From: Macrostomum lignano
Lineage: Eukaryota
NCBI GenBank assembly: GCA_002269645.1
Contig: NIVC01003005.1
Coordinates: 62,001-126,000, forward strand
Length of the DNA stretch: 64,000 nt
Direction of reading: 5' to 3'
Shown one piece after another: positions 22,011-56,596 of the stretch; within the stretch, counting starts at the first letter, position 1, and each line of letters starts with the position of its first letter. The notes below the pieces were generated by a model that saw only the letters and a list, made by a program, of their open reading frames with translations, was not told where the DNA came from and made no database searches. The translations under genes and the position numbers were made by a program.

Positions 22011-22083
22011 ACACCTCCAAATGACACGCACCTCAAACGCACTAGGAATCCAGCAGGGCTGGTTGCTTTGCAAATCGTCTCAC

Positions 22084-22767: not shown

Positions 22768-22849
22768 CTGCAGTTGTGCGGTTGCTAAGGCTTCAAAAAA
22801 TTGTGCGTAAGACGCAGAGGCATCCTAGGATACAAAATGGCATCGGATG

Positions 22850-23145
22850 TTTCAAAATGGCACACTACGATTCAAAATGGCGTTCCATGATTCAAAATGA
22901 CACTCAGTGGTTCGAAATGGCATTCCATGATTCAAAATGGCACCTGATGATTCAAAATGGCACCCATGATTCAAAATGGCACCCAGTGATTCAAAATGAC
23001 ACCCAGTGATTCAAAATGGTACTCTATGATTCAAAATGGCACTCAGTAATTCAAAATGACACCCAGTGATTCAAAATGGTACTCTATGATTCAAAATGGC
23101 ACCCAGTGATTCAAAATGGCATGTCATGATATTCAAAATGACACT
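22850..23145. repeat. 20-bp minisatellite TGATTCAAAATGGCACCCAG (protocadherin intron 3)
   Basis: Direct observation. Confidence 0.92.
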
Positions 23146-24656: not shown

Positions 24657-25011
24657 CCCACTAAAAAACTTAACCATAGCATGTATCACCTTTTAGATAA
24701 TTATCGGGATAATTTGCCGCTAAGCATGAGTCGATGGGAGGCTGGGGGAAAGTGTGAGAAATGTGACAGACTGCCTCTCCTAAAAGCAATAATCTGGTAG
24801 ATCGTGACACGTGGCAGATAACAGACGAACAAATTTGCAATCATAATCTCAGGTGCTGGATGAGAGACGACCCGCTAGGAAGAGCCATAGGGGTCAGCTG
24901 CCACGTGGGGCGTGACTATCCAAATGAATTGGAGGGCTGCTGGGTGTGCTTCTCAATGAGCCCAGATGCAAAAAGCCAGCAGATTCCCAATCTTCATCAC
25001 CTTCTCTCCGC

Positions 25012-25043
<32 letters not shown>

Positions 25044-25448
25044 TCCTTCCAAGTCCCCATAAAAAGTATTTGTGATTCACTGTGGCAGGATGCGGGGAGT
25101 TGCACAGGAGCTTCCTACTGAGCAGTCTAAAGAATCTGCATTGAATTGGGGGCAAGGCCTCAGTTGGGGGGTACTGAAAAATCCTATCACGAAGAGTTAG
25201 CTATGGGATTTAATAACAGCGTACAATTATTGCAAACTGTGTGCCAAGTTGTACACTTGTACACCACCTGGTATACAAAATTGCAACTCAAAATTTAACA
25301 ATCAGATTGAAGCCAGACTTTGTTATAATGGCCAGCTGAAAAGTTCTCTAATTTAAAATTGTCACCTCATTGATTTTTTATACACTTTTTATAAAGTTCA
25401 TTCTGATATTTCAAAGTGCTAAAGATATTTACGACGACACAGACGACG

Positions 25449-26125
25449 CTACAGAGTCACTCATTTGGCGCCGCAGAGTCACTCATTTGGCGCGCTACAG
25501 AGTCACTCATTTGGCGCGCTACAGTCACTCATTTGGCGCGCTACAGTCACTCATTTGGCGCCACAGAGTCACTCATTTGGCGCGCTACAGAGTCACTCAT
25601 TTGGCGCGCTACAGAGTCACTCATTTGGCGCCACAGAGTCACTCATTTGGCGCGCTACAGAGTCACTCATTTGGCGCCACAGAGTCACTCATTTGGCGCG
25701 CTACAGAGTCACTCTTTTGGCGCCACAGAGTCACTAATTTGGTGCGCTACAGAGTCACTCATTTGGCGCCACAGAGTCACTCATTTGGCGCGCTACAGAG
25801 TCACTCATTTGGCGCCACAGAGTCACTCATTTGGCGCGCTACAGAGTCACTCATTTGGTGCGCTACAGAGTCACTCATTTGGCGCCACGGAGTCACTCAT
25901 TTGGCGCCACAGAGTCACTCATTTGGCGCGCTACATAGTCACTCATTTGGTGCGCTACAGAGTCACTCATTTGGCGCCACAGAGTCACTCATTTGGCGCC
26001 ACAGAGTCACTCATTTGGTGCGCTACAGAGTCACTCATTTGGCGCGCTACAGAGTCACTCATTTGGCGCCACAGAGTCACTCATTTGGCGCCACAGAGTC
26101 ACTCATTTGGCGCCACAGAGTCACT
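25449..26125. repeat. 22/24-bp minisatellite AGAGTCACTCATTTGGCGC(CAC|GCTAC) (protocadherin intron 3)
   Basis: Direct observation; explains the spurious ORFs at 25370-26212. Confidence 0.95.
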
Positions 26126-26584
26126 TATTTACACACAAAAATTCGTAAATTTTCTTATCACAGGCTCAGTTCCCTTCTTTCTCCCTTCTTGACAGCCAGC
26201 AGCCGCCCGTGATGAAGCTGTCAAACTTTGCTAGCATAAAATTTTCTTAGAAAACCAGCGACTGAATCGAAAATGAGGGAAGGCTGCGTGAACTTCCGGT
26301 TCACCTTAACGCCAGGTTGCTCAAAAAAACCCGTTACAAGATTACTATGATCTCTATAAAAGCAATTTTTTGGAGCCGTTGTCTGCCTGCTTGACAATGG
26401 TGCAGCCCTGTGCTACTTCAATTTCTAACTGCTCAACGAAATGATTAATTGGGTGCAAATGAATAAAGTCTGGTTTGTGGCCCGTCTGTCTGTCTGGTTC
26501 AAGTCGCTAAATCTATTGTAATATTGAATCTAACCCGTTTATTAGCCCTTTCAGTTGACTTTCTGGTTAGCAAGAGGCTGTAAA

Positions 26585-27540
26585 TCAGTTCATGAGATCA
26601 TAGGTGAGTTCATGAGATCATCATGAGTGAGTTCATGAGATCCTGAGTGAGTTCATGAGATTATGCGTGAGTTCATGAGATCATCATGAGTGAGTTCATG
26701 AGATCCTGAGTGAGTTCATGAGATTATGCGTGAGTTCATGAGATCATTGGTGAGTTCGTGAGATCATAATGAGTGATTTCATGAGATCATAGGTGTAGTT
26801 CATGAGATCATAGGTGAGTTCATAAGATTATCATGAGTGAGTTCATGAGATTATGCCTGAGTTAATGAGATCATAGGTGAGTTCGTGAGATCATCATGAG
26901 TGAGTTCGTGAGATCATCATGAGTGAGTTCATGATATCATGCGTGAGTTCATGAAATCATGAGTGAGTTCATGAGATCATAGGTGAGTTCATGATATCAT
27001 GCGTGAGTTCATGAGATCATGAGTGAGTTCATGAGATCATAGGTGAGTTCATGAGATCATAGGTGAGTTCATTAGATCATCATTAGTGAGTTCTTGAGAT
27101 TATGCGTGTGCTCATGAGAACATAGGTGAGTTCATGAGATCATAGGTGGGTTCATGAGATCATAGGTGAGTTCATGAGATCATAGGTGAGTTCATTAGAT
27201 CATCATTAGTGAGTTCATGAGATTATGCGTGAGTTCATGAGATCATGAGTGAGTTCTTGAGATTATGCGTGTGCTCATGAGAACATAGGTGAGTTCAGGA
27301 GATCATCATGAGTGAGGTTATGAGATCATAGGTGAGTTCATTAGATCATCATTAGTGAGTTCATGAGATTATGCGTGAGTTCATGAGATCATGAGTGAGT
27401 TCTTGAGATTATGCGTGTGCTCATGAGAACATAGGTGAGTTCAGGAGATCATCATGAGTGAGGTTATGAGATTATGCGTGAGTTCATTAGATCATGAGTG
27501 AGTTCATGAGATTATGCGTGAGTTCATGAGATCATGAGTG
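26585..27540. repeat. ~20-bp minisatellite GTGAGTTCATGAGATCAT(AG/GC) variants (protocadherin intron 3)
   Basis: Begins ~25 nt from the exon 3 donor. Confidence 0.95.
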
Positions 27541-27564
27541 AGTGAACACCGAGCCGGTTCTCAC

Positions 27565-27844
27565 CTTGACAACAACAGACGCGCTGCCCGACCTCCTTGG
27601 GTTGCCTCCGTCGAACGCCATCACTGTGAAGCTGTACGTCGATCTCTCCTCCCTGTCCAGCAACCGCAACGTTTTAATTTGGCCGTCGTGCCGACCGACG
27701 CTGAACACGGAGCGCAGGCTGATCTCCGCCAGGCTGTAGGTCACGTGACCGTTCGGACCTTCGTCTGGGTCGTGCGCCGTCAAGACACCCACCAGTTCGC
27801 CCGGTCGCTGCTGTTCAGCGATGCGGAACTCCAGGGGCATGTTT
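27565..27844 (-). CDS. Protocadherin exon 3 (EC6)
   Basis: Acceptor ttcAG|A AAC ATG. DPDEGPNG, LDREE, DGGNP motifs. Donor AAG|GTGAGA, phase 0. Confidence 0.92.
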
Positions 27845-27849
27845 CTGAA

Positions 27850-28813
27850 GTTAGTTATTCAGTTAGTTAGTTAGTTAGTTAGTCAGTTAGTTAGTCAGTT
27901 AGTCAGTTAGTTAGTCAGTTAGTCAGTTAGTTAGTCAGTTAGTCAGTTAGTCAGTTAGTCAGTTAGTTAGTTAGTCAGTTAGTTAGTTAGTCAGTTAGTT
28001 AGTTAGTCAGTTAGTTAGTTAGTTAGTCAGTTAGTCAGTTAGTTAGTTAGTCAGTTAGTTAGTTAGTCAGTCAGTTAGTTAGTCAGTCAGTTAGTTAGTC
28101 AGTTAGTCAGTTAGTTAGTCAGTTAGTCAGTTAGTCAGTTAGTTAGTTAGTCAGTTAGTTAGTTAGTCAGTCAGTTAGTTAGTCAGTTAGTCAGTTAGTT
28201 AGTCAGTTAGTCAGTTAGTTAGTCAGTTAGTCAGTTAGTTAGTTAGTTAGTTAGTCAGTTAGTCAGTTAGTTAGTTAGTCAGTTAGTTAGTTAGTCAGTC
28301 AGTTAGTTAGTCAGTTAGTCAGTTAGTTAGTCAGTTAGTCAGTTAGTTAGTCAGTTAGTCAGTTAGTTAGTTAGTCAGTTAGTTAGTTAGTCAGTTAGTT
28401 AGTTAGTCAGTTAGTTAGTTAGTCAGTTAGTTAGTTAGTCAGTTAGTTAGTTAGTTAGTCAGTTAGTCAGTTAGTTAGTTAGTCAGTTAGTTAGTTAGTC
28501 AGTCAGTTAGTTAGTCAGTTAGTCAGTTAGTTAGTCAGTTAGTCAGTTAGTTAGTCAGTTAGTCAGTTAGTTAGTTAGTCAGTTAGTTAGTTAGTCAGTT
28601 AGTTAGTTAGTCAGTTAGTTAGTTAGTTAGTTTGTTTGTTTGTTAGTTAGTTAGTCAGTTAGTTAGTTAGTTAGTTAGTCAGTTAGTTTGTTAGTTAGTT
28701 AGTCAGTTAGTTAGTCAGTTAGTTAGTTAGTCAGTTAGTCAGTTAGTCAGTTAGTTTGTTAGTTAGTTAGTCAGTTAGTCAGTTAGTCAGTTAGTCAGTT
28801 AGTCAGTTAGTTA
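27850..28813. repeat. (GTTA/GTCA)n microsatellite filling protocadherin intron 2
   Basis: About 960 bp of TAAC/TGAC tetramers on the transcribed (-) strand. Confidence 0.97.
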
Positions 28814-28818
28814 CGCAC

Positions 28819-29893
28819 CCGCACGGAGCGGCAGCCTCAGGGCAGAAGCTCGGCGCATTGTCATTCTCGTCCAGAACTTGGACCACGATGTCCAGCGGTC
28901 GCGAAGTCTTGGCCGGTTCTCCGCTGTCCTTGGCCGACACTCGCAGCTGGTAGCTGGCCTCCTGCTCCCTGTCCAGGGTTTCCTTTGTCAGCAGCAGTCC
29001 GTTGCGCTCCCCCAGGCTGAACAATCGGCTGTGCGGTGTGTCCTCGAGAACGTACGTCACCCCGTCTCCGTCAGCGTCCGTAGCGTTGAACTGGTGCACC
29101 GGAGCGCCTGGCGGCCGGTTCTCCACCACCCGCAGCGTCAGAATCGGCGTCGTCATTGTCGAACTCAAGCTGGTCGCCTCGGCGAACTCCGGCCGATTGT
29201 CATTGACGTTTCCGACTCGGATGGTCAGGCGGCGTTGAGTGACGAGCTCGGCTCGCCGCCGTCTGAGCAATTCAGCAGCAGCTCGTGCTGCTTAGCGGCC
29301 TCTCTGTCTAACGGCCTGGCGGTTCGGAGCTCGAACTCGCGCTGCTGGCCGCGGCTGAGTCCGCCGCCGCCCGTTCGCGAGACCAACTGGAAGGATCGAA
29401 GAGACTCGGCGCCGCCCAAAAGGCTGCAGTCTAGTCGGCTGGGGCCACCGTCCGCGTCAGTCGCCGTTATCCAAGCCACCAGCTCGGCACCAGCTCCGTT
29501 TTCCATCACCTCAAGGTTGCCGGCTCCAACGTCTTCGGTTGCTGGCGTGACATCGATGACTGGCTGCTCGTCGTTCCGGTCCAGGACGCTGACGGTGACA
29601 GTGGCGCTTCCGGTCTGCGGCCCGACTCCGCTGGAGTCCCGCCTGCCGTCTCTGTCCACGGCCTCGAGGATGATTACGTGCACCGGCTGGTGCTCGTAGT
29701 CCAGCCGGCGGCGCAGGAACACGCCGCCAGTGGTCGGGTCGACGCTGAAGAAGCCGCCGACGCCTCCGACGCCACCGGCGACGCTGCTCAACCGGTAGCG
29801 AATCTGAGCGTTCAGTCCCTCGTCCGGGTCGGTTGCGTTCATTCTGATGAATACGGTGTTCAGCGGAAGGTCTTCCTGCACGTGGACCGTCAT
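28819..29893 (-). CDS. Protocadherin exon 2 (EC3-EC5), 1-nt deletion frameshift at ~29247-29249
   Basis: Acceptor aaacAG|ATG ACG. Motifs DPDEG, LDYE, DRNDEQP, LDRE, NVNDNRP, DENDNAP are split across two ORFs that overlap at GAG CCG AG CTC GTC. Donor GG|GTGCGT. Length 1075 needs +1 nt to meet the phase-2 acceptor of exon 3. Confidence 0.9.
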
Positions 29894-30012
29894 CTGTTTA
29901 AATGGGTTTTGTTGGTGTTCTTGCGCAACGAAGAAATCAAAGCTGTACTACTTGTTTTCAACACTCTGATTGACCAGTGGGCGACATCCAAGCATTGAGA
30001 AAGCTTCCAACT

Positions 30013-30803
30013 TGTCCGCTACCTAAGGGCTACCGAGTGAGTGACCATCCACTTTCTGGACTCTCCGCGGAGGGCGACCGCACTGCGGACACCGGCACCA
30101 CCGGATCTCCCCTGCCCAGCACAACAGCGCACAATATTTAGGCCAACTTGACCGAAGCTACTGAGTGTCTGCGTTAGTTCGTAATGTAGTAGGGGGGTTT
30201 AGTTCAAGCAGTTTTGCTAAGGCGTTTGCCATTCGTCGGGATGAATTATTTTAGTAGCATGAATTCGAGAATAAGCAGTTTTGCTTTTACGCTACTATTA
30301 GTAGTTCACCTTCGGGAAAATATCTGAAGCTATGGGAATTCGAGTCTTAGCGGGTTTCTCTATTAGTAAAAGGCTGTTTGGCCTCGGGAAAAGCATCCTG
30401 TTCAGGACCGTCCATTGGACAACATTTGTAAGAGATCTAAGTCTCAAATAAGCCAGACTAAGGGAGTCTCCCCTTTATAAAATAAAAGAATATATATAAG
30501 AAAGTATAAAAGGTAAGATCGGGGTAAAATAGGGAGGCTAAGAGGAGTCTACCGCTTAGTCAAAACGGAGTCTACCGAGAATAGGAATTAGTACAGTCAG
30601 TTAGATAGAAGTAAGGGAAAGGAACCAGGAGTCTACCGGTTCTAATAACATAGTAATAATAGTGCTTAAATCTTTGCATATTTGGTTCAATAATATCATT
30701 TTCTTTTGTTTGTTTATTCCAATAATCTTCCATGAAGTCGACTCTTGTCTCACTTATTTTAATCTAAAACTATTATTATAAGGGACATTAGTCTGGTGGC
30801 AGC
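30013..30803 (+). mobile_element. Probable LTR (TGTCC...GGACA, 30013-30787) followed by a tRNA-Leu-type PBS remnant, in protocadherin intron 1
   Basis: 5-bp terminal inverted TGTCC/GGACA, internal TATA/AATAAA-rich block, TGGTGGCAGC at 30794-30803. No TSD and no gag/pol. Confidence 0.4.
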
Positions 30804-30916
30804 AACCTACCAAATTAGAGTACATAATAACAGAAGTAATAATAGAAAACCAGAATAAACCAGTAGCCTAAACCGCAGGTACCACGCGTGTTCAGTAATT
30901 TGAAACAACGGCCCAC

Positions 30917-31801
30917 CTGTTCCTTGGAAAATCGCGGCTTCTCATCGTTCCGATCGATCAGTCGGACGTCGATCTGCAACCGGCCGACCCGAGGCGGACT
31001 GCCGCCGTCCTTGGCCAGCAGTTCGAGCTTATGCCGAGCAACCTTCTCCCTGTCCAGCGGCCTCACCGCAATCAGCTTCGGCTGCAGTCTGCTGTCGCCC
31101 AGGCGAAAGTACGGAAGGTCGCCGTCCTGCTCTAGCGAGTACTCTTGCACATTGAACGGCTCAGCGTCCAAGTCGACAGCCATGGGCAATTTGAACTCTT
31201 CGCCATCTTTCGGATGCTCGTCGATGTTTAGAATGAACTCCGCCTGGGGAAAGGTTGGCGCGTTGTCGTTCAAGTCGCGCACCCGGATGGCGACCTCCAC
31301 CATCTGGCTGGCGTCCGGATTCACGGCGTCAATGACGCGAACTCGCAATGTCAACTCGCAGGCGTCAGTCGGCGATCGCGAATGCGCCCAGCCGGAGCGT
31401 CGACTCCGTCCTCTTCGGCGTCTCCGTTGGAGTCGGCTTCTGCGCGGCTGCCGACAGCAGCGCCGCACCAGGGTGCACATCCGGTCCCGGTCGAGGCTCA
31501 CGTTTGGCGCCGTGCTGACCAGCCCGCTGTCCCCGTCCACTCTGAAGTACCGCAGGCCCGGCTCGCTGCTCGCCTGGCCCAGGCTGACGAACCGGGCGCC
31601 GCCCGGGCCTCCGACGGGAAGCCCCGGCTGGCCGGACAGCCGGCCGATTTCACGTGGCCGAGCCGGCGGCTGCTCGCCTAAGTCTTCGTCTGTCTCAAAG
31701 GTGACTCGGATGGCGCCGCCGCTCGTTGTTGACAGCCACAGCGTTGACAGAAGTAGCAGCGCCGAGCCAGCGATGAAGCTGTTTGAGAGGCTGTAGGTCA
31801 T
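30917..31801 (-). CDS. Delta-type protocadherin (7 EC repeats), exon 1: signal peptide, EC1, EC2
   Basis: ATG at 31801 gives MTYSLSNSFIAGSALLLLSTLWLSTTSG (signal). Cadherin motifs DLNDNAP, DLDAE, LDRE, DRNDEKP. Donor CAG|GTGGGC, phase 0. Confidence 0.92.
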
Positions 31802-32790
31802 TGACTCTGTCGTTGGTAGAAGCACTGTTGGTGCAATCTGTTGCCAATAGCTAGTCTTATAATTTGATTCGAATTCAGCACGGACTGGGTCTCACTGAGC
31901 TCCAACAACTGAACAAATTTATCGGCAATATCATTTGCCTCCTGTTGCTCGACAAGCAATCCTTTCTTATAGATCCCTTCTCAACCCCCCTTGTGCTCAC
32001 AAACCTTCTCAGCGAGTCTCCGCCAACCGGAGCAGTCGGGCTGGTTCCATTGGCTCTGGCCGGCACACACCGACACCGGTACACCTGCGCAGGTCACGTC
32101 TCAAAGGCATAAATTTCTGTAGCCAATTCGCGGGCAAGCAGGGCATTTCTTCTACTTTCTACTATTAAAAAAACACTTCCCTGCGTGTAGCAAGCAGTTG
32201 CAGGTCCGGTTATTCAACTGAGGCCAAAATTGCTTTCCTTTTTTCCATTTCGGTATTAATAGCAAAGAAAATTAACTATTCCAAATATAGTAAAACTCTC
32301 AGCATTCCTCCTTTTCCCTCCCGCAAATGCTATCCAAACCAAATCGAGAAGCGAATTAGCGAAAATAAAGCTGAGTCACTTGGCCGGAACAGAGTCAATC
32401 AAAACCGAGTTTTTATTCGCTAAACTCCAGCTCGGTTTGATCTCAAATCAGGACAGAGTCGCTTGAGAAATGAAAGACAATAGTTAGCAGTTTCACCCGG
32501 GAAAGAGGCTGGATGGGGAGGTGGGGCTGCGGACTCGCTCAGCAGGACTTCCGGCTGCGATTCGTCCGGCGCGTTGTTTAATTTGAGTTTTCCCGGGACA
32601 CGAGAGGCAAACTCAAATAAGGGCTGCTCACGCGTGAGGGCGTGGAGACGGCTGGCTATGGTGTACTGTTTCAGTGCGCGTTTGCGATTTCGCAACTTTG
32701 AAGCCTCACCAGTTCATGAGATTTCACAACCTCAAATAATTGATTACACCTGCCCTAATGAGCAGATTTGCAACCGACAGCTCAACCGCA

Positions 32791-38300: not shown

Positions 38301-38695
38301 GACCATAAAGAGATTATACAGACGTCACAGAGGAGACAGAGACCATAGTCTCTAGGTTGCTAAATTGCAGTTCCTGACAGACAAGCAGATCAGCCTCTGC
38401 ACCAAGCGAAGAGTTTCAGTTTTGTTGCAAAGCACAAGAATGCAGGATTGCTTTAGAATTTTTGCGAGCATAAAATGTTTAACGACAAAAAATGAATGAC
38501 AACTGAAGATGGGGAACAGAGTCAACACAGGCCTGAAAGGATGCAGTCAGGTCGTTGCGAATGAGTAAGCAGCTGAGAATTTGAGGTTCTAAAAGAGATA
38601 ATTGCAGTGAGGAAGATCCTAAGCTTCACGAGGCCGTACAGCTTTAATTGACAAGAGGAGAAAACTGCAGTCTACATGCGTGCAAGTTTGTTTGC

Positions 38696-39318
<623 letters not shown>

Positions 39319-39956: not shown

Positions 39957-41447
39957 CTGGGTTTACCGGGTGCTGGGTTTACCGGGTGCTGGGTTTACCG
40001 GGTGCTGGGTTTACCGGGTGCTGGGTTTACCGGGTGCTGGGTTTACCGGGTGCTGTTGGGTTTACCGGGTGCTGGGTTTACCGGTTGCTGCTGGTTATAC
40101 CAGGTGCTGGGTTTACCGGGTGCTGGGTTTACCGGGTGCTGGGTTTACCGGGTGCTGGGTTTACCAGGTGCTGGGTTTACCGGGTGCTGGGTTTACCGGG
40201 TGCTGGGTTTACCGGGTGCTGGGTTTACCGGGTGCTGGGTTTACCGGGTGCTGGGTTTACCGGGTGCTGGGTTTACCGGGTGCTGGGTTTACCGGGTGCT
40301 GGGTTTACCGGGTGCTGGGTTTACCGGGTGCTGGGTTTACCGGGTGCTGGGTTTACCGGGTGCTGTTGGGTTTACCAGGTGCTGGGTTTACCGGGTGCTG
40401 AGTTTACCGAGTGCTGGGTTTACCGGGTGCTGTTGGGTTTACCAGGTGCTGGGTTTACCGAATGCTGGGTTCACCGGGTGCTGGGTTTACCGGGTGCTGT
40501 TGGGTTTACCAGGTGCTGGGTTTACCGAATGCTGGGTTCACCGGGTGCTGGGTTTACCGGGTGCTGTTGAGTTTACCAGGTGCTGGGTTTACCGAATGCT
40601 GGGTTCACCGGGTGCTGGGTTTACCGGGTGCTGTTGGGGTTTACCGGGTGCTGTTGGGTTTACCAGGTGCTGGGTTTACCGGGTGCTGTTGGGGTTTACC
40701 GGGTGCTGTTGGGGTTTACCGGGTGCTGGGTTTACCGGGTGCTGTTGGGTTTACCAGGTGCTGGGTTTACCGAATGCTGGGTTCACCGGGTGCTGGGTTT
40801 ACCGGGTGCTGTTGGGTTTACCAGGTGCTGGGTTTACCGAATGCTGGGTTCACCGGGTGCTGGGTTTACCGGGTGCTGTTGGGGTTTACCGGGTGCTGTT
40901 GGGTTTACCAGGTGCTGGGTTTACCGGGTGCTGTTGGGGTTTACCGGGTGCTGTTGGGGTTTACCGGGTGCTGTTAGGGTTTACCGGGTGCTGTTGGGGT
41001 TTACCGGGTGCTGTTGGGGTTTACCGGGTGCTGTTGGGGTTTACCGGGTGCTAGGTTTACCGGGCGCTGCTGGGTTTACCGGGTGCTGTTGGGGTTTACC
41101 GGGTGCTGTTGGGGTTTACCGGGTGCTGGGTTTACCGGGTGCTGTTGGGGTTTACCGGGTGCTGGGTTTACCGGGCGCTGCTGGGTTTACCAGGTGCTGG
41201 GTTTACCAGGTGCTGGGTTTACCAGGTGCTGGGTTTACCAGGTGCTGGGTTTACCAGGTGCTGGGTTTACCAGGTGCTGGGTTTACCAGGTGCTGGGTTT
41301 ACCGGGTGCTGGGTTTACCGGGTGCTGGGTTTACCGGGTGCTGGGTTTACCGGGTGCTGGGTTTACCGAATGCTGGGTTTACCGAGTGCTGGATTCACCG
41401 GGTGCTGGGTTTACAGGGTGCTGTTGGGGTTTACCAGGTGCTGGGTT
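39957..41447. repeat. 16-bp minisatellite CTGGGTTTACCGGGTG with +TGT variants
   Basis: About 1.5 kb; source of the spurious GFTGCWVYRV ORFs. Confidence 0.96.
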
Positions 41448-41814
41448 TTGAGCTTACCTGGTTATCACCTATTCTGTAGCAGTAGAACTACGAGTACGAG
41501 TGTAAATCAATATTGTTGAGGAAACTTCAGAGAGCTTAATCTGTGAAAGTTCATCGAATACTATGAACTGCTCAGCGAGTCGAGTAGAGTACATGTAGAG
41601 TACGTTTGTGCATATCGTGACTTTTTCGGTCACTGCCTAATTTAGATTTTTTCTATTCTAACAGAACTACAGTTCGTAATTACTTGTCTGAGGTAGCACT
41701 GAGGGTTTGGGTGGCAATTCGGCAAACGAATATAGAGACTTAAATTTTTTAAATAATCAATTTCATTTTATGATCAGGATTATAGAGTGGGTGATACAAC
41801 GCAGGGAGATGAGT

Positions 41815-42705
41815 GAAAAGAGGAGAGGAGAGGAGGGGAAAGGAGGGGAGAGGAGAGGAGAGCAGAGGAGAGGAGAAGAGAGAGAGAAGAGAAGAAGCGA
41901 GGAGAGGAGAGAGAGGAGGAGAAGAGAGGAAAGGAGAGAGAGGAGATAGAGGAGAGAAAGGAGAGGAGAGGAGAGAGAGGAGGAGAAGAGAGGAGAGGAG
42001 AGAGAGGAGAGAGGAGAGAGAGGAGAGGAAAGAAGAGGAGAGGAGAGGAGAGGAGAGGAGAGGAGAGGAGAAGAGAGGAGGGGAGAGGAGAGGAGAGGAG
42101 AGGAGGGGAGAGATGGAAGAGGAGGGGAGAGAGGAGAGGAGAGGAGGGGAGAGGAGAGGAGAGGAGAGGAGTGGAGAGGAGAGAAAAGAGAGAGAGAAGA
42201 GGAGAAGAGAGGAGAGGAGAGAGAGGAGATAGAGGAGAGAAAGGAGAGGAGAGGAGAGAGAGGAGAGAAAGGAGAGGAGAGAGAGGAGAGAGAGAGGAGA
42301 GGAGAGGAGAGGAGAGGAGAGGAGAGGAGAGGAGAGAGAGAGAGGAGAGAAGAGAGAGGAGAGAGAGGAGAGGAGAGAGAGGAGAGGAGAGAGAGGAGAG
42401 GAGGGGAGAGGAGAGGACAGGAGAGGAGAGGAGGGGAGATGAGAGGAGAGGAGAGAGAGGAGAGGAGAGGAGAGGAGAGGAGAGGAGAGGAGAGGAGAGG
42501 AGAGAGAGGAGAGAGAGGAGAGGAGAGAGAGGAGGAGAGGAGAGGAGAGGAGAGGAGAGGAGAGGAGAGGAGAGGAGAGAGAGAGGAGAGGAGAGGAGAG
42601 GAGAGGAGAGGAGAGGAGGGGAGAGGAGAGGAGAGGAGAGGAGAGGAGAGGAGAGGAGGCGAGAGGAGAGGAGAGGAGGGGAGAGGAGAGGAGAGGAGAG
42701 CAAGG
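41815..42705. repeat. Polypurine (GAGAG)n low-complexity tract
   Basis: Direct observation. Confidence 0.96.
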
Positions 42706-44270: not shown

Positions 44271-44680
44271 AAGTAGACAGCAATCCTGCAGTGCTGGAGA
44301 GTTTGCAGTCCAAGACAAAAAAGATTATAGAAACTCTTCGAAGCTTTCAAATATATGCAGCGATCTCGACAAAGGAAATTAGCGATCGAACAGAAGAAAT
44401 TTGCTCGATATTAGCTAACTAGTTTATTTTATCACTGGACAACCAGTTTTCAAGTGTGAACAGGTTCGAATCTGTCTGCGGCTACGCAAGGCTAAATGTT
44501 TTAGTTGATTCGATAATTTTTACACAGACAACCTTCGAAGTGCTTCGCTTTCAGCTCGCATTGGGCCAAGTAGATAGGACTGAGATAAGAGTTCGACAGA
44601 GGGACAGGCGCACAACCTTGATTCCGCTTCGCGACAACCTATTCATTGAGACAGCGTGTTGGCAGGCAGCTGACTCTGCT

Positions 44681-44943
44681 TTAGTTTTCATTGACGCTTC
44701 GCTTCTTGCGGTAGGAGCTGCGATAGTAGCGGCTGTAGTACTCGCCAAGCAGAGTGCCTAGGTCCTTCTCGTTCATCGAGCAGTCGGTCTTGCAGGAGCG
44801 GATGCTGGAGCCGCGGATGCCGAGGGCGGAGCTGACGCAGCACTGGCCTGGCGGGCAATCCGAGTCCACCTGGCAGTCGATGCGGCGTGGCATGCCGAAG
44901 TCGTAGTAGCGCGGCATCTCTCGCTCGCAGACGCCGCCGTATC
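44681..44943 (-). CDS. Secreted double cystine-knot-like precursor, exon 3 (Cys6, second Cys domain, RKKR site); total 149 aa
   Basis: Acceptor tacgcAG|GA matches phase 1. RYGGVCEREMPRYYDFGMPRRIDCQVDSDCPPGQCCVSSALGIRGSSIRSCKTDC...RKKRSVNEN*. Confidence 0.85.
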
Positions 44944-46369
44944 CTGCGTAGTGTTTGATTGGTTGCTATTTTTAGCACAGGAGGGTTTGTCCGACGAGTC
45001 GAGGGGGGGGGGTTTAAACGAAGAATGCGTTTGATTGGTTGCCATTTTTAGCACTCCCTCGGCAGGGATACAAGTGAAAATCACGGGCTCTTCTAATTGG
45101 TTGCTATTTTTAGCGTGGCAGGGCTACCCCTGGGCAAGGAAAACCTTTTTTGCTTGATTATATATTTAGAGCTCAACATTTTTTCTCCAGAAAGTAAAGT
45201 TTAGCGCTCAGTGTTTCTTTAATTGGCTCGCTAATTTTATGCCCTCGCTAATTTAGATTTTTAAAAATGGAAACCCAATCAAAAGGTTCCCGATTATTGA
45301 ATACTCGGAGCATTAAAAGTGCAAACTTACTGAAGATATTCCATAAAATGGCCCATTGCAGTTCTCTACGAAAACACAAAACTTTCAGGCAAAAGTTGTC
45401 CGAGCCCACTCAACAAACTGCATTTTATCCTTGGGATTCGAAATCCAATTCTGAGACCGGAAAACGGCGTCGCGCCCTTCCCAGCGCCACAATTTGATCA
45501 GCTTAAGGAGGCTTTAAAATCCCCCCCCCGATGGGACCTCAGAGTGCTGGGAATCGGCGACAGACGAGAAGGGAAGAGCGAGGATGAAGACTGGGAGACT
45601 CCCCGGTCTCATGGCAAACTTGGAATATTCGATAAGGCTGGGGAACAGCCCGCTGGGGATTCTGACTTGGGGAAACGATTTCTCCTGCCGCACGGAACCT
45701 CAGCTTTCAATGCTTCTTTGTTGCCAAGTAGGGCGGAGAATCTTCTTTTCGGGGAACTGCTCAGAACTCTGCCATGTCCCCCCCCCACCCAACGAAATAA
45801 AATGCCACTTCTCGCGGCTGCTAACTGAATTCTGGAGAAAGAGAATTTGATTGAGGGGAAAATGGTTGATTTTATGGACCGGGCCGAGCTGGGCGCCTCA
45901 TCAATTTTCAGCTCCCTGCTGCTGCTGCTGCTGCTGGCTTCTTAGCCGGCCAGCAGGAATGCAAAATGAGGAGAGCTGCAGTGGCGGCTCTTCTCCCCAC
46001 AGAATAAAAATTGGCCAAGCAAAACAGAGAGAACTGGCCCCTCATTGCGTGGCGCGGAAATGTTAAAAATAAGTCAGTGGCACAAGAAATTATGGCAAGA
46101 GATTTCTGGCAGCATTCTGGATGTGGCCGCTGAGCCAGCTGTGCAACATTTATTAACGAAGTTTTGAGTGGCAGCTTTTTTGTACCCAAAACTGCATGTG
46201 GATACTAAAAATAGACTTTATTGTAAATAGACATCCGCGATGGAAGTCTGGGTGGTGCATTGATGGGAACATATTGCAACGGTACTCATGTGGTTTAAAA
46301 ATATCCCCAAAAGAAGCGCTCCGTATGGAAAGCTTTTAGAATTGGTATATTTATTTTTGTCTGGGTCCC

Positions 46370-47430
46370 CGATGTTGGCTAGATTAGCAATCCATTCTAT
46401 TCCTTCATCAGTGATGCTGGCTAGATTAGCAATCCATTCTATTCCTTCATCAGTGATGCTGGCTAGATTAGCAATCCATTCTATTCCTTCATCAGTGATG
46501 CTGGCTAGATTAGCAATCAATTCTATTCCTTCATCAGTGATGCTGGCTAGATTAGCAATCCATTCTATTCCTTCATCAGTGATGTTGGCTAGATTAGCAA
46601 TCCATTCTATTCCTTCATCAGTGATGCTGGCTAGATTAGCATTAGCAATCCATTCTATTCCTTCATCAGTGATGTTGGCTAGATTAGCAATCCATTCTAT
46701 TCCTTCATTAGTGATGTTGGCTAGATTAGCAATCCATTCTATTCCTTCAGTGATGCTGGCTAGATTAGCAATCCATTCTATTCCTTCATCAGTGATGCTG
46801 GCTAGATTAGCAATCCATTCTTATTCCTTCATCAGTGATGCTGGCTAGATTAGCAATCCATTCTATTCCTTCATCAGTGATGCTGGCTAGATTAGCAATC
46901 CATTCTATTCCTTCATCAGTGTGATGTTGGCTAGATTAGCAATCCATTCTATTCCTTCATCAGTGAGATGTTGGCTAGATTAGCAATCCATTCTATTCCT
47001 TCATCAGTGATGCTGGCTAGATTAGCAATCCATTCTATTCCTTCATCAGTGAGATGTTGGCTAGATTAGCAATCCATTCTATTCCTTCATCAGTGATGCT
47101 GGCTAGATTAGCAATCCATTCTATTCCTTCATCAGTGATGTTGGCTAGATTAGCAATCCATTATATTCCTTCATCAGTGATGTTGGCTAGATTAGCAATC
47201 CGTTCTATTCCTTCATCAGTGATGTTGGCTAGATTAGCAATCCAATCTATTCCTTCATCAGTGAGATGTTGGCTAGATTAGCAATCCATTCTATTCCTTC
47301 ATCAATGATGTTGGCTAGATTAGCAATCCATTCTATTCCTTCATCAGTGATGGCTAGATTAGCAATCCATTCTACTCCTTCATCAGTGATGCTGGCTAGA
47401 TTAGCAATCCATTCTACTCCTTCATCAGTG
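46370..47430. repeat. 42-bp minisatellite GATGCTGGCTAGATTAGCAATCCATTCTATTCCTTCATCAGT in knottin-gene intron 2
   Basis: About 25 copies; begins ~20 nt from the exon 2 donor. Confidence 0.96.
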
Positions 47431-47451
47431 TCACTCATCAGGGTCACTCAC

Positions 47452-47527
47452 TCTTATAACCGTATCGGCAGACCAGGCCATCGCAGCACACCGTGTCCGA
47501 GTAGCAAAACGAGCCCTCAAAGCCGCA
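47452..47527 (-). CDS. Secreted double cystine-knot-like precursor, exon 2 (ICK domain Cys1-5)
   Basis: Acceptor cacctttttAG|TGC, CGFEGSFCYSDTVCCDGLVCRYGYK. Donor A|GTGAGT, phase 1. Confidence 0.85.
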
Positions 47528-47674
47528 CTAAAAAGGTGCAAAAAGGTGAAAATCGCAAATGACGAATATCGAATATCTTCAGCACACGCAGATCTCATCA
47601 GCGCAGAAACCGATATCAAATTTCAACGAATAGCTTATAGTTAGATCGAATATGATGATTCGATTGCAACTCAC

Positions 47675-47785
47675 GTTGCTATCTGAGCCGCCGCCCATGA
47701 TCCTGATGAAGCCCGCAGCCTCCCTAGGACCCATGCTGATCGACAGGGCGACAGTCAGAGCAATCAAAATGGTTGCAGCTGTCAT
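47675..47785 (-). CDS. Secreted double cystine-knot-like peptide precursor, exon 1 (signal peptide)
   Basis: ATG at 47785, MTAATILIALTVALSISMGPREAAGFIRIMGGGSDSN. Donor AAC|GTGAGT, phase 0. Confidence 0.85.
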
Positions 47786-48104
47786 TTCGCTGCTTTGTTA
47801 AAATATGGAATTCAGGGAAAACTTTTCAAAGGTTGAAAAATAGTTTTCTTAGGATCGACTTGAACAGCTAGCGCGCCCTGGAGATGCCGCTGGGTCCCTG
47901 TTTTAGCTGACGAAATTGATGACTTCTTCAGCCGCTCGACTAGAAAGTGATTCTTTCCAGCGGCAGCCCGAGTGCAGAGGGTTTATACCCCACCGAGGCT
48001 GGGGTTCCTGACCAATGGGGAGAGGCCTCAGACTGGCTGGCAGTTTGAGGAGCTAGCTCGATCATTGGCAAATCACATTCTGAGCATGGGTACCATGAGA
48101 CTCT

Positions 48105-49685
48105 AACATCATGAGACTCATTATCATGAGAGTTGAGCATCAGGAGACTTTAGTATCATGAGAGTCTAGCATCATGAGAGTCTAGCATCATGAGAGTCTA
48201 GCATCAAGAGAGTCTAGCATCATGAGAATCAAGCATCATGAGAGTCTAGCATCATGAGAATCAAGCATCATGAGAGTCTAGCATCATGAGAGTCTAGCAT
48301 CAAGAGAGTCTAGCATCATGAGAATCAAGCATCATGAGAGTCTAGCATCATGAGAGTCTAGCATCAAGAGAGTCTAGCATCATGAGAATCAAGCATCATG
48401 AGAGTCTAGCATCATGAGAATCAAGCATCATGAGAGTCTAGCATCATGACAGTCTAGCATCATGACAGTCTAGCATCAGAGACTTCAGTATCATGAGAGT
48501 CTAGCATCATGAGAATCAAGCATCATGAGAGTCTAGCATCATGACAGTCTAGCATCATGACAGTCTAGCATCATGAGACTTCAGTATCATGAGAGTCTAG
48601 CATCATGACAGTCTAGCATCATGACAGTCTAGCATCATGAGACTTCAGTATCATGAGAGTCTAGCATCATGACAGTCTAGCATCATGACAGTCTAGCATC
48701 ATGAGACTTCAGTATCATGAGAGTCTAGCATCATGAGAGTCTAGCATCATGACAGTCTAGCATCATGACAGTCTAGCATCATGAGACTTCAGTATCATGA
48801 GAGTCTAGCATCATGAGAGTCTAGCATCATGAGAGTCTAGCATCATGAGAGTCTAGCATCATGAGAGTCTAGCATCATGACAGTCTAGCATCATGACAGT
48901 CTAGCATCATGACAGTCTAGCATCATGAGACTTCAGTATCATGAGAGTCTAGCATCATGACAGTCTAGCATCATGACAGTCTAGCATCATGAGACTTCAG
49001 TATCATGAGAGTCTAGCATCATGACAGTCTAGCATCATGACAGTCTAGCATCATGAGACTTCAGTATCATGAGAGTCTAGCATCATGAGAGTCTAGCATC
49101 ATGACAGTCTAGCATCATGACAGTCTAGCATCATGAGACTTCAGTATCATGAGAGTCTAGCATCATGAGAGTCTAGCATCATGACAGTCTAGCATCATGA
49201 CAGTCTAGCATCATGACAGTCTAGCATCATGAGACTTCAGTATCATGAGAGTTGAGCATCAGGAGACTTCAGTACCATGAGAGTTGAGAATCAGGAGACT
49301 TCAGTACCATGAGAGTTGAGAATCAGGAGACTTCAGTACCATGAGAGTTGAGAATCAGGAGACTTCAGTATCATGAGAGTTGAGAATCAGGAGACTTCAG
49401 TATCATGAGAGTTGAGCATCAGGAGACTTCAGTATCATGAGAGTTGAGCATCATGAGACTCAGTAAGTATCACGAGAGTTGAGAATCAGGAGACTTCAGT
49501 ATCATGAGAGTTGAGCATCAGGAGACTTCAGTATCATGAGAGTTGAGAATCAGGAGACTTCAGTATCATGAGAGTTGAGCATCAGGAGACTTCAGTATCA
49601 TGAGAGTTGAGCATCAGGAGACTTCAGTATCATGAGAGTTGAGCATCATGAGACTTCAGTATCATGAGAGTCTAGCATCAGGAGA
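48105..49685. repeat. 16-bp minisatellite GAGAGTCTAGCATCAT with longer GAGACTTCAGTATCAT-containing variants
   Basis: About 1.6 kb array upstream of the knottin gene. Confidence 0.95.
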
Positions 49686-51930: not shown

Positions 51931-52665
51931 CTAGCTACCGATATGTATCGAAAACAGCGTACAATCGTCACAGCTGATGCCTGTACCGGCACGAGGCGCC
52001 CCTGGTGCAGGCCCCCGGTTCCGGCCGCCGTGGAACCACATCCGGCAGACGCCTCTGGGCGGATGCTGGAACCGGGGATGATGCGGCAGCTGCACGTGAG
52101 GCGGCGGGTGGCTCTGCGCGAACGACGACCCAGATGAGGATGAAGGGCCGCCGCCGCGGCCGCGACCGGCGCCACGAAAAGGATGCGGCTGATGGTGATG
52201 ATGATGGTGATGGCCAGGGAATCCGAACGGAGGGCCTCCAGCGGCTGGAGGCGGCGGCGGAGGCGGCTGCTCAAAGTATTGAGGATTAGCCGCTGACGGT
52301 GGCGGCTGTATCGGCGGTTGCGAGGGTGGCCCCGAGGGGAACAGAGAGCGGAGCACCTGCGGGAACATGCCGCTAGCGGCCAGTTCGCCCCGCAGCGGCT
52401 CCAACAGCTGCCTGATCCTTTCCACTGTGAGGTCCTCAGACTGCGCGTGCAGGTCCGGATAGTGAGACTTAAGCAGATTCCACAGCATCTCTTTCACTGA
52501 GCTGCCGCTGCTTGAGGAAGCTGGGGCCGAGTCTGACGATGAAGCCGGCTGAGGCGGCTGTTGCTGAGGCAGCGGCGGCGGCTGTTGCTGGGGAGGCACT
52601 GAACTGCTTAAGCCGGGTGATGCCGCCGATATGCTGCTGGTAACCTGCTTCAGGATGTCCGCAAT
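51931..52665 (-). CDS. PPP1R10: PNUTS exon 3 (Pro/His/RGG-rich, terminal Cys/His finger-like)
   Basis: Acceptor ccaacAG|ATT GCG, phase 0. IADILKQV...HHHHHHH..RGAGRGRGG..CRMWF...CDDCTLFSIH*. Spliced total ~910 aa. Confidence 0.88.
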   Translation of the reverse strand: MADILKQVTSSISAASPGLSSSVPPQQQPPPLPQQQPPQPASSSDSAPASSSSGSSVKEMLWNLLKSHYPDLHAQSEDLTVERIRQLLEPLRGELAASGMFPQVLRSLFPSGPPSQPPIQPPPSAANPQYFEQPPPPPPPAAGGPPFGFPGHHHHHHHQPHPFRGAGRGRGGGPSSSSGSSFAQSHPPPHVQLPHHPRFQHPPRGVCRMWFHGGRNRGPAPGAPRAGTGISCDDCTLFSIHIGS

Positions 52666-53494: not shown

Positions 53495-53945
53495 GAATCC
53501 CACATCCTTTTCCTTATCTAGAATCCCACATCCTTTTCCTTATCTAGAATCCCACATCCTTTTCCTTATCTAGAATCCCACATCCTTTTCCTTATCTAGA
53601 ATCCCACATCCTCTTCCCCATCTAGAATCCCACATCCTTTTTCCTATCTAGAATCCCACATTCTCTTCCCCATCTAGAATCCCACATTCTCTTCCCCATC
53701 TAGAATCCCGCATTCTCTTCCCCATCTAGAATCCCACATTCTCTTCCCCATCTAGAATCCCACATCCTCTTCCCCATCTAGAATCCCACATTTTCTTCCC
53801 CATCTAAAATTCCACATCCTCATCCCGATTCAGAATCCCATCCTGCTCGCCACTCAGAATCCCATCCTGCTCGCCACTTAGAATCCCATCCTGCTCGCCA
53901 CTTAGAATCCCATCCAGCTCGCCACTCAGAATCCTATCCTATTCC
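53495..53945. repeat. 26-bp (TAGAATCCCACATCCTTTTCCTTATC) then 24-bp (AGAATCCCATCCTGCTCGCCACTC) arrays in PNUTS intron
   Basis: Direct observation. Confidence 0.93.
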
Positions 53946-53997
53946 AGACGAACTCGGACAGACCCATAAAAAGATAGAAAGAAGCCAGGTGGCGCAC

Positions 53998-55517
53998 CTA
54001 TACGAGGCTGTGTACTCAGGCATGCCGTGAATCCGGTGCGGCTTATACCACACAATAGCTTTAGCAACATCCGCTCCGAAGTCATCCGAACCGGAAGCGC
54101 CGCCTCGCCTGGCTCTGGTGAGCAACTCGCACTCGCGCTCGTGCTCCCGCCTGGCCATCTCCTCGACGCTGGAGCCGCTGGCATCGGCGCCGCCGGGAAG
54201 CTGCGGCGCTGACGAAATTGCCGACCGCCTCTCGGATGGGTCCAACTCAAAGTAAAAGACCTGCTCCAGAGCGTCGAAATGAGCCCAGGTGACTCGTTTT
54301 CGTTTGCTTTGCTGCTGTTGCTTTTGCGTCTGTTGCTCTTGAGCTTGCTCAGATTGCTTATCTTTCTGCTTCTTAGACTGGGCCTGGTTTGCACCGATTG
54401 GTTCAGCTGCGGCTTCCGGCTTCTCTGCTTTAACCGGCGCAGAAGCAGCAGACCCGTCCGAAACAGCAGACGGTGCTCGTTTTTTTCTAACAATTTTTGG
54501 CAAAGAGGACCGACAAACGCCGAATAGCGAGTCCATGAGGAACTGGGAGCCGTCGGTTGACACGCCAGCAGGCTTCGCTACTGCAGCAGAGGAAGGAGAG
54601 GTTGGAGACGGCTTGGACGGAGGGACAGCGATCGGGTCCGCTTCTAAAGAGCTCGTCGGCCGAACTTCGATAGACGAGTGAATGGACTCGAGGTCGTTCT
54701 GCTGCTCTAATCTGGCCCGTTTTGCAGGCTTGCCAGATGAGGCGGACGCGGCAGAAGAAGCCAATTCTCCAGATAACTGTTTCTGTTGTTTTCTTTTAGA
54801 TCCTGCCGGCTGCTGCTGGTCTTCAGACACCAACTCGTCCAAAGCCAGCAGGTTGGTATCGCGAAATGTTGCTGGCGCGGTTCTCACGGTGGAGGGCACC
54901 GACTGCTGGCGAACTGACTCGGCCTCTCTATCCGGCTTCTCTTTTTTAGACTTCTTCTTTTTCTCTTTTTTGTCTTTCTTCTTTTTCTGCCGGCTAGTCG
55001 AAGACGCGGCATCTTCTGAGATGTCGTCGCCGCTTTCCGGGGCGGTGGCCGCAACCGCAGCAGCGGCCTCCTGCTCTGCGGCAGCCTTGATGCAGGCCAG
55101 CCACCGCTCCACCACATTGGCAGCCAGCGGTGCCAGCTCCGAGTCAGCTGATTTGGCAATCTGCTTTACCACCTTGGCAGTGTTGTTGGCCTGCAGCATG
55201 TCAACGCCTACAGGCAAGCGGAGGAACACATCCAGCAAGAGTTTCTGCAAGGCGACGTTTGTTTCTGAGCAGGCTGTGTTAAGCCAATCATTGAGCATCT
55301 GCCAGCCGCCTTGACGGCAAAACTCTGATAGCAGGCTGGAGTCTTCGGTGATCTTCAATATGTTGAGCATGATAGCCTTGCTAACCAGCTTGCTGGCCCG
55401 TTGCATCACGGCGTGCAGCTTGGCGACGGAGTCGCGCGATCGAATACCGCCGCGGTCATCGATGAGGCCCTCGCGGGCCAGCTGTCTGAAGAATTCCAAA
55501 TGCTGGGCTTCCGATTC
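53998..55517 (-). CDS. PPP1R10: PNUTS / PP1 regulatory subunit 10, main coding exon (initiator codon unresolved)
   Basis: N-terminal TFIIS-N (LW) domain closely parallels human PNUTS (GGWQMLNDWL..LPVGVDMLQANNTAKVVKQIAK). PP1-docking motif KRKRVTW..LEQVFYFELD. Donor AG|GTGCGC, phase 2. Confidence 0.92.
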
Positions 55518-56596
55518 CTGCAATTTATTTGCGTTTAGATCGAGAATTTTTCATTATATATTCTATACTGGCCTACTTATAAACTTACTAAGTAGTGTAA
55601 ATAGAGTTTTATCTATTATTTAGCTAAATACAGAAAATCCATAGCTAGGTTAACAGATTCAGCAAAATGTCGGGACTATTTATCGAATTAAAAGCTACTA
55701 ATTTACATTCAGATAAATAGCAAATTTCAATCCGCGAATTAGTCCCAGACAGAACCATATTTTTTTATAATCTGGCACGCAATCTACTCCCGAACTTACT
55801 CCACAATGCTAACAGGAGTAACGGGTTTTAAGTTTTTTTTGCGTGCATATTCGTGGCTTCAATTCGTTAATATTTTACTTTTTTCTTGGCTTTAGAGCTT
55901 TACTGACAACAATAACATATTTTTATGTAATCACTATTTCATATTGGAAGACAAATTTATTTGAACTCATGGCACGCAGCCACAGCGTGTGTTGCAGCGG
56001 TGTGGAATGTTAAAACAAGCGGAAGCTCCCCGCCATTTTTGGTAGCGCGCGTTTATTCCTCATAAATCAATAAATATAGATTGATGCAATAATTATTGAT
56101 AAGAATATATAGTGTCACAGCTAGGTATATAAACTTTATAGTAGGCACCATTAGAAGTTTTTAAAAAAGTATTAATGAAAATGGAAGGCATCAGGAACTT
56201 TGATCCTGTGGTTTTTGCCAAGTTTAAATCGCGGATTAAATATGTACAAAGACACTGTACTTACTGATAGGGTTGTAAGTGTAAAACCCATCGTACATTA
56301 CAAACATTTACCAGTTCAGCATGATAGGAAGCAACAAATGTAAACAGTGAGCATGTATTAGGTTGGAATGTGATTATAAAAAAAATATACATTAGAAGCA
56401 AGATGCAAACAAACAAACTTAGTTGAACGAAATGAAACGTGATGTAATTTTGCTTTCAAAATTCCTTTTTTATATCAGATAGAAACGGTTAGGGTCATGA
56501 ACTACATGCTCAAATGTTGTTGCTGTTGTTTTCAAACTGACTTATTCTTTATAGTTCGTTGTAAACAAAACAAACTAGAAAAGTAGTCGCACAGAA

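Follow-up and report, generated by a model that had tools for sequence, protein, structure and literature searches.

The stretch analyzed here, called the window throughout, comprises 64,000 nucleotides of the flatworm Macrostomum lignano genome (assembly GCA_002269645.1, contig NIVC01003005.1, positions 62,001 to 126,000 of the forward strand) and carries on its minus strand the three-exon gene Mlig005172, encoding a secreted cysteine-rich precursor. The splice model (Table 1) was verified on that strand: an ATG at 47785 opens exon 1 (111 nt), a TAA ending at 44681 closes exon 3 (263 nt including the stop), and the joined coding sequence of 450 nt, interrupted by GT-AG introns of phase 0 and then phase 1, gives 149 codons and a stop. 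Splicing in silico thereby reproduced the exons, splice sites, phases and reading frame of the original prediction, which was made from the letters alone, and identical annotated proteins and the same boundaries in two other genomic copies agree with it. The list of open reading frames (ORFs) had also been described accurately, as it contains a 68-aa frame that runs from exon 1 into intron 1 and a 78-aa frame that starts at a Met inside exon 3, with the exon-2 stretch appearing in another frame (47431-47619, 62 aa). The gene had further been called hidden, but its product matches the M. lignano proteins PAA53895.1, PAA74677.1 and PAA82649.1 (BOX15_Mlig005172g1/g2) with 100% identity across all 149 aa, and the locus is already in the public annotation as BOX15_Mlig005172, a hypothetical protein. 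Two older gene models differ from it: P0002 mis-splices exons 2 and 3, and P0004 (380 aa, "Secreted protein") fuses Mlig005172 to an upstream P/Q-rich gene. The two other genomic copies in GCA_002269645.1 have exon boundaries identical to those of the window gene and encode identical proteins, with intron 2 measuring 2508 nt in the window copy and 2555 and 2117 nt elsewhere; judging from copies that were not aligned, a minisatellite within this intron is probably the source of most of the length difference. No second copy of the gene was found within the window by tblastn.

An orthologue of 154 aa, P0003, is 59% identical to the window protein and lies intronless on a 925-nt Logan contig from run SRR28338164. 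The contig reads continuously across both predicted junction sites, which is transcript-type evidence for the splicing, although it comes from a related species. Identity between the two proteins is concentrated in GFIRIM, CRYGYKRYGGVCERE, CQxDSDCPP and LGEYYxRYYRxSYRKKRS, and the ratio of nonsynonymous to synonymous substitution rates (dN/dS) is 0.40. A search for paralogues had been proposed with the original prediction, and three further M. lignano groups with the same layout were found (Mlig031025/019154, Mlig022787 and Mlig030832), making four groups in all. Their N-terminal part consists of a signal peptide, a [G/A][F/Y] start with a Gly-rich stretch and the framework C-x6-C-x5-CC-x4-C-xn-C; a variable linker then leads to C-x5-C-x4-CC-...-C-...-C, a (Q/E)YY tail and a terminal basic site, which reads RKKR, RKRFG, RRFGR or a final R depending on the group. 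Two of the paralogues, P0012 (…YYPRRFGR) and P0015 (…MMRKRFG), end in RF-GR or RF-G, the usual C-terminal amidation (RFamide) signature, whereas the window gene ends in …SSY-RKKR-SVNEN without a Gly, so C-terminal processing may differ among the paralogues.

The UniRef names attached to the family (Ixodegrin, WAP, Prokineticin, Calglandulin, Disintegrin, ITG-like) differ between near-identical proteins and were therefore treated only as leads. Ixodegrins are tick salivary disintegrin-like peptides with an RGD or KGD motif; the window protein itself carries this name, and neither motif occurs in its 149 aa. One match to the family profile, the 3142-aa repeat protein P0006, proved spurious, as its best listed stretch covers query residues 16-58 (one of 12) and lacks the Cys framework.

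Counting the cysteines gave both spacings as originally described, C-x6-C-x5-CC-x4-C-x10-C for domain 1 (Cys38, 45, 51, 52, 57 and 68) and C-x5-C-x4-CC-x14-C-x3-C for domain 2 (Cys86, 92, 97, 98, 113 and 117). The signal peptide has a hydrophobic core with a mean Kyte-Doolittle value of 2.25, and basic sites stand at 82-83 (RR) and 141-144 (RKKR). The reading as a secreted two-domain precursor with an RKKR convertase-type site is borne out, and the orthologue retains that site. The RR said to end the linker is indeed present, but it is not conserved as a cleavage site, being PR in the orthologue, which makes the release of two separate knottins unlikely as far as sequence can tell.

A structural model was computed with AlphaFold2 (AF2) from a 48-sequence alignment and reached a mean predicted local distance difference test (pLDDT) score of 76.5, with values near 90 for residues 41-70 and between 75 and 86 for residues 81-120; a model from a 2-sequence alignment (pLDDT 47) was discarded. 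The model contains hairpins at 55-59/66-70 and 97-101/110-114 and helices at residues 3-17, in the signal peptide, and 124-145. The domain 1 spacing of 6/5/0/4/10 fits the inhibitor cystine knot (ICK) consensus CX3-7CX3-8CX0-7CX1-4CX4-13C, and the predicted strands 55-59 and 66-70 hold Cys57 (V) and Cys68 (VI), so that both spacing and model point to a typical ICK framework. A Foldseek search against the PDB returned no match at E <= 0.001, yet its list consists mostly of knottins, headed by the double-ICK toxin Xt3a (E 0.049) with Hi1a and DkTx behind it. One module can be superposed on single-domain spider ICK toxins with template modelling (TM) scores of 0.6-0.76, normalized to target length, and a root-mean-square deviation (rmsd) of 1.4-3 Å over 32-42 columns. 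When the family profile was compared with PDB sequences, Xt3a again emerged as the closest solved relative (E 2.5e-4). By sequence and by predicted fold, then, the nearest solved relatives are ICK and double-ICK arthropod toxins, in line with the ICK spacing originally noted for domain 1.

Scanned against Pfam, the window protein, the orthologue and the paralogues gave sub-threshold matches only, to Dickkopf_N, Conotoxin_I2, WAP and Toxin_12 (cut-offs for Dickkopf_N, WAP and Toxin_12: 25, 20.8 and 21 bits). Toxin_12 did not match the window protein, and the orthologue P0003 reached 16.8 bits, below the cut-off. WAP likewise gave no match for the window protein, and 15.6-16 bits over only ~18 residues for a paralogue and the orthologue, so that the cut-off for an eight-Cys WAP four-disulfide core was not reached.

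The original prediction had also read domain 2 as a second cystine knot. In the model, its hairpin carries the CC doublet and Cys113 rather than the last two cysteines, which lie only three residues apart; a second classical knot is for this reason unlikely, and domain 2 is probably something else, as its alignment described below also indicates. The predicted arrangement would fit a two-disulfide hairpin module with one extra disulfide, the Cys97/Cys117 pair, and the pattern C-x5-C-x2-G-x2-C-xn-C of this domain corresponds to the disulfide-directed beta-hairpin consensus. Domain 2 alone found nothing significant among PDB sequences, and no prokineticin, MIT1 or Dkk chain. The Dickkopf/prokineticin flavor ascribed to domain 2 thus exists as a similarity, but both Pfam and Foldseek place it below threshold.

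Comparison with known toxins separates the two domains. Xt3a (phi-xibalbin3, PDB 7rz3, from remipede venom) shares C-x-EG-x-FC...CC-x-GL-x-CR...YG-VC with domain 1 (residues 37-71), and both proteins have two tandem Cys-rich modules; however, Xt3a is made up of two genuine six-Cys ICK repeats linked by 4 residues, whereas the M. lignano protein has a 17-residue linker and a different framework and hairpin in module 2, and is extended N-terminally by a peptide and C-terminally by a helix and a convertase site. Xt3a is, moreover, a venom toxin, and Mlig005172 has no known venom context. Spider ICK toxins (Toxin_12; Magi4, Hc3a, PcTx1, ProTx-II) resemble domain 1 in Cys framework and predicted hairpin, although their fold E-values all exceed 0.001 and domain 1 sits inside a larger precursor. 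Double-ICK toxins have two tandem classical ICK domains, an arrangement that domain 2, in its predicted structure, does not provide.

Two leads pointed to prohormone-3, a protostome family that includes the ITG-like proteins and Drosophila "space blanket" (spab): one paralogue bears the name "ITG-like peptide", and the original prediction had itself named ITG/prohormone-3 as a conserved family to which a close match would make the gene ordinary. Prohormone-3 sequences were collected from paper supplements (Platynereis and hymenopterans) and from a database search with 244 matches; among the best 120 of these 244, all named ones are arthropod, and unnamed transcript assemblies account for about 30. 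The proteins comprise a signal peptide, an N-terminal peptide starting with Trp, and modules of six, four and six cysteines, and in many species an ITG peptide follows a KR site. We estimate with a probability of roughly 0.6, from comparison of sequences and gene structures, that Mlig005172 is a shortened, divergent flatworm member of this family. A match of the kind foreseen therefore exists, backed by profile alignment with controls and by intron position and phase, but it is remote rather than close.

Pairwise BLASTP against prohormone-3 gave an E-value of 5e-4 and an alignment collinear from the signal peptide onward. With hhalign, five Macrostomum sequences aligned to 44 prohormone-3 sequences with a probability of 93.5%, E 2.4e-7 and a score of 51.1 over 85 columns, in the expected order: domain 1 falls on module 1, and Cys86, 92, 98 and 113 fall on the four-Cys module. 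The reversed template scored 24.6 and 30 column shuffles scored 8-18, while each module on its own still aligned to its expected partner (25.5 for module 1, 24.1 for module 2). MAFFT, run independently, placed the ten corresponding cysteines in shared columns, the six of module 1 being invariant, and aligned the KKR of RKKR with the EKR that precedes ITG, so that a dibasic site near the C-terminus is a further common element.

The likeness extends to details of the individual parts. A small-then-aromatic residue pair followed by a short conserved peptide stands directly after the signal peptide in both groups; the pair is [GA]|[FY] after the hydrophobic N-terminus in all five Macrostomum sequences, A|W in arthropods and G|W in Platynereis, where SignalP puts the cleavage at ALG-WS according to the paper supplement. 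Platynereis module 1 reads C-x6-C-x5-CC-x4-C-x11-C, with x10 as the last loop in the window protein, and scores 21.2 bits with Toxin_12 against the 16.8 bits of the Macrostomum orthologue. The module 2 pattern C-QVDSD-C-PP-G-QC-C also matches the four-Cys framework, although the last loop is x14 instead of x10 and Cys97 is additional.

Two other placements were considered and dropped. The CC doublet shared with the third prohormone-3 module suggested that domain 2 might belong there, but hhalign and MAFFT both put it on the middle four-Cys module. A likeness of the tail QYYSG to QYTSG of hymenopteran ITG precursors was rejected as well, since the consensus there is HTAGEKR and the tail alone gave no hhalign signal.

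Gene structure, which is independent of sequence scores, gives a second line of evidence. The window gene, the two other genomic copies, Mlig031025 (with both intron positions and phases the same) and four arthropod prohormone-3 genes (Apis dorsata, Tenebrio molitor, Cloeon dipterum and Lepeophtheirus salmonis) have a common organization. Exactly five residues separate Cys V from a phase-1 intron in the Macrostomum genes (C-RYGYK|R), and the arthropod genes have a phase-1 intron at exactly this distance from Cys V of module 1 (C-VDVDG|V). With two arthropod introns in ~255 aligned nucleotide positions, we estimate the chance of such an exact coincidence to be on the order of 1%. All genes compared also have a phase-0 intron ahead of the Cys-rich part, at a position that is not alignable and that in Macrostomum is just before Cys I.

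Several observations weigh against placing Mlig005172 in prohormone-3. A prohormone-3 hidden Markov model gave the window protein 14.4 bits (E 0.069 at Z = 60,000), indicating remote homology, and identity to arthropod and annelid members is only ~23-34%. Domain 1 alone scored higher with Xt3a than with prohormone-3 module 1 in hhalign (32.2 against 25.5), so that the ICK part on its own is not specific to prohormone-3, and placement in the family depends on collinearity and the intron. Module 3 (C-x5-C-x(6-10)-CC-x13-C-x8-C) has no counterpart, leaving 12 cysteines where the arthropod and annelid proteins have 16, and the ITG-type peptide (ITGQGNRIF) is absent, the downstream SVNEN being unrelated to ITG and not conserved. 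Conversely, the Macrostomum module 2 has the extra Cys97/Cys117 pair and a Tyr-rich helical tail, and M. lignano has four paralogue groups where one gene is the rule. A profile of the protein and its orthologue, searched against 1.84 billion representative proteins, retrieved no genuine non-Macrostomum protein at E <= 0.001, and literature on a Macrostomum knottin, prohormone-3 or ixodegrin, or on Mlig005172, yielded nothing, expression data included. Should M. lignano also possess a canonical 16-Cys prohormone-3, the Mlig005172 family would become a paralogous offshoot. Oyster and scallop prohormone-3, with 12 of 16 cysteines in common and a Cys-rich peptide of 84 aa, could be compared by description only (PMC8398477). 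The Cys-rich span of the window protein, 80 aa, is close to that reported length, and the ITG peptide is not carried by all family members (PMC8398477).

Another origin to be weighed is a lineage-specific Macrostomum family of bivalent knottin-like secreted proteins unrelated by descent to prohormone-3, whose exocrine products might be a protein of the seminal fluid or prostate, a secretion of adhesive or epidermal glands, or an ion-channel toxin used on prey or in defence. It would account for the restriction of significant E-values to Macrostomum sequences, for the expansion to four paralogue groups and for a dN/dS that, at 0.40, is not especially low, and it is in keeping with the venom protein Xt3a as best solved relative by both sequence and fold, with Hi1a and DkTx in the fold list; ITG-like proteins are themselves abundant in one spider venom (PMC7407881). 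What speaks for prohormone-3 descent instead is the collinear two-module profile match far above its controls and the exact agreement in intron position and phase, which convergence hardly explains. The fold matches all have E > 0.001, domain 2 is unlike a second ICK in the model, and the N-terminal peptide, the tail and RKKR are strictly conserved, as is typical of processed hormones. In addition, M. lignano is not known to have a venom apparatus, and the toxin, seminal or gland roles originally suggested found no evidence in the comparisons made. An exocrine origin of this kind is on balance unlikely.

We considered it very unlikely that the gene encodes a truncated prokineticin/astakine/Dickkopf-type (colipase-fold) cytokine or growth factor with an added N-terminal knottin. 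Prokineticins begin with C-x5-C-x4-CC, as domain 2 does before a basic hairpin, a likeness that extends to MIT1, astakine and the second cysteine-rich domain (CRD2) of Dickkopf. Weak Dickkopf_N matches (15.3 bits, E 0.026) and the presence of the Dkk4 N-terminal region, Dkk1, MIT1 and procolipase in the fold list go the same way, but the former stay under the 25-bit cut-off, Pfam Prokineticin does not match, and the latter superpose with TM scores of 0.15-0.19 at rmsd > 11 Å. One paralogue is called "Prokineticin domain-containing protein" in UniRef, a name of little weight given the mutual inconsistency of these names, and modules 2 and 3 of the prohormone-3 profile match Dkk1 CRD2 (E 0.008). 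Against this stand the six cysteines of domain 2 in place of ten, the missing AVIT N-terminus and the failure of the isolated domain, noted above, to find any such chain in the PDB. A host-defence (antimicrobial) knottin-type precursor resembling tachystatins appears extremely improbable: tachystatins A, B1 and B2 occur among the weak PDB sequence matches to domain 1, yet at E 0.26-0.9 they are not significant, the two-module architecture and processing site are unlike tachystatins, and the predicted mature protein (residues 26-140) is near neutral (pI 6.4) rather than strongly cationic.

The Dickkopf match also bears on prohormone-3 itself. Profile positions 106-174, spanning modules 2 and 3, align with the C-terminal CRD2 of Dickkopf-1 at E 0.008-0.03, which suggests, at the level of profile similarity, that canonical prohormone-3 may consist of an ICK domain followed by a colipase-fold domain, an organization not stated in the prohormone-3 literature examined.

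As a prohormone-3 member, the Mlig005172 precursor would be processed as follows. The signal peptide is expected to be removed after Gly25, as judged from the -3/-1 rule and the alignment with prohormone-3, leaving an aromatic N-terminus, Phe26, at the position of Trp in other prohormone-3 proteins. Folding in the endoplasmic reticulum would produce two disulfide-rich modules separated by the variable linker, the first (Cys38-Cys68) of inhibitor-cystine-knot type and the second (Cys86/92/98/113) a putative counterpart of the four-Cys C-x5-C-x2-G-x2-C-xn-C hairpin module, with an extra Cys97-Cys117 disulfide presumably anchoring the start of the Tyr-rich C-terminal helix. The disulfide pairs expected on this scheme are 38-52, 45-57 and 51-68 in the first module and 86-98, 92-113 and 97-117 in the second. 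Furin or a prohormone convertase may then cut after RKKR144, with carboxypeptidase trimming of the basic residues, to give a secreted protein of ~115 residues with six disulfides, ending near Tyr140, and a short, non-conserved C-terminal peptide. Since the family is expressed in neurons of insects, annelids and oysters, the protein most likely serves, by analogy, as a neuro-endocrine or paracrine ligand: in Drosophila, 20-25% of midbrain cells express spab (PMC5927767), which was also picked out by RNA interference (RNAi) in a screen for thermal nociception (bioRxiv 053413), and the oyster transcript is found mainly in visceral ganglia (PMC8398477).

Xt3a also matches the prohormone-3 profile (hhalign score 28.9), and its recruitment to venom from a prohormone-3-like gene is conceivable in view of this similarity. 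A bolder proposal holds that the Macrostomum genes represent a flatworm-specific radiation of bivalent ligands, each an ICK plus a hairpin module, built on the ancient prohormone-3 scaffold and re-purposed, with the four paralogues acting on ion channels as endogenous or exocrine modulators and the same scaffold serving independently as a source of arthropod double-ICK venom toxins such as Xt3a. We regard it as a long shot; if true, a class of venom knottins would have its long-sought endogenous ancestor in prohormone-3, and ion channels would be the receptor class of an orphan protostome prohormone.

What is new is the family assignment and the two-module variant; the locus is otherwise an ordinary annotated gene and not a novel double-knot toxin. 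No receptor or mechanism is known for any member of prohormone-3, an old protostome prohormone broadly expressed in insect neurons. The assignment would extend the family to Platyhelminthes through divergent two-module members backed by a common intron, would suggest the ICK module and the first hairpin module as its conserved core, and would correct machine-made database names such as Ixodegrin, WAP and Calglandulin. It would also offer four paralogues for functional work in M. lignano, which is amenable to RNAi and transgenesis.

Table 1. Coordinates of features at the Mlig005172 locus, in window positions.
Feature	Position	Strand	Remarks
TATAAA motif	47982..47987	-	202 nt upstream of ATG; pattern search; possible core promoter element
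Exon 1, coding part	47675..47785	-	residues 1-37; signal peptide residues 1-25 (47785-47711) and conserved N-terminal stretch GFIRIMGGGSDSN
Intron 1, phase 0	47528..47674	-	GTGAGT...TTTTTAG; directly before Cys I of domain 1
Exon 2, 76 nt	47452..47527	-	residues 38-62 and first base of codon 63; Cys I-V of domain 1 (CGFEGSFCYSDTVCCDGLVCRYGYK)
Intron 2, phase 1, 2508 nt	44944..47451	-	GTGAGT...CGCAG; exactly five residues after Cys V of domain 1
42-bp minisatellite, 25 copies	46371..47430	.	within intron 2; 93% matches
Exon 3, coding part	44681..44943	-	domain 1 end (Cys68, to 44927), linker, domain 2, tail, RKKR, SVNEN and stop
Domain 2, Cys86-Cys117	44875-44780	-	in exon 3
Tyr-rich predicted helix	44779-44711	-	in exon 3
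RKKR	44710-44699	-	in exon 3, residues 141-144
SVNEN and stop codon	44698-44681	-	in exon 3
AATAAA	44423..44428	-	252 nt after stop codon; probable polyadenylation signal

Parts of the 5' flank of the window gene align with the 5' untranslated region (UTR) of the orthologue. A block TTTGAAAA..TTTCCC, located ~40 nt upstream of the ATG, is kept in the latter and is a possible regulatory element. The same may hold for a 3' UTR block, GAAGGTTGTCTGTGTA.AAAA (window 44510-44545, minus strand), which is common, by eye, with positions 757-790 of the orthologue contig; MAFFT did not put its two copies in register.

Mini- and microsatellite arrays are unusually dense in the window, with 36 Tandem Repeats Finder rows at score >= 300. 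Long arrays lie, for example, at 48094-49685, 39957-41448, 41819-42700, 38695-39318 and 27849-28813, and a 16-bp unit repeated 99 times begins only ~300 nt upstream of the Mlig005172 ATG. The neighboring features on the minus strand are a P/Q/H-rich ORF of 222 aa at 51931-52599, which has no Pfam match and is the part that the older model P0004 fuses to Mlig005172, a Med26/TFIIS-type helical bundle protein at 53934-55523, and protocadherin-like cadherin-repeat exons with a transmembrane end at 22042-31825; a mitochondrial carrier gene occupies 7823-9461 on the plus strand. In the other genomic copies of the locus, a QVR/Ly6-type gene is found further upstream.

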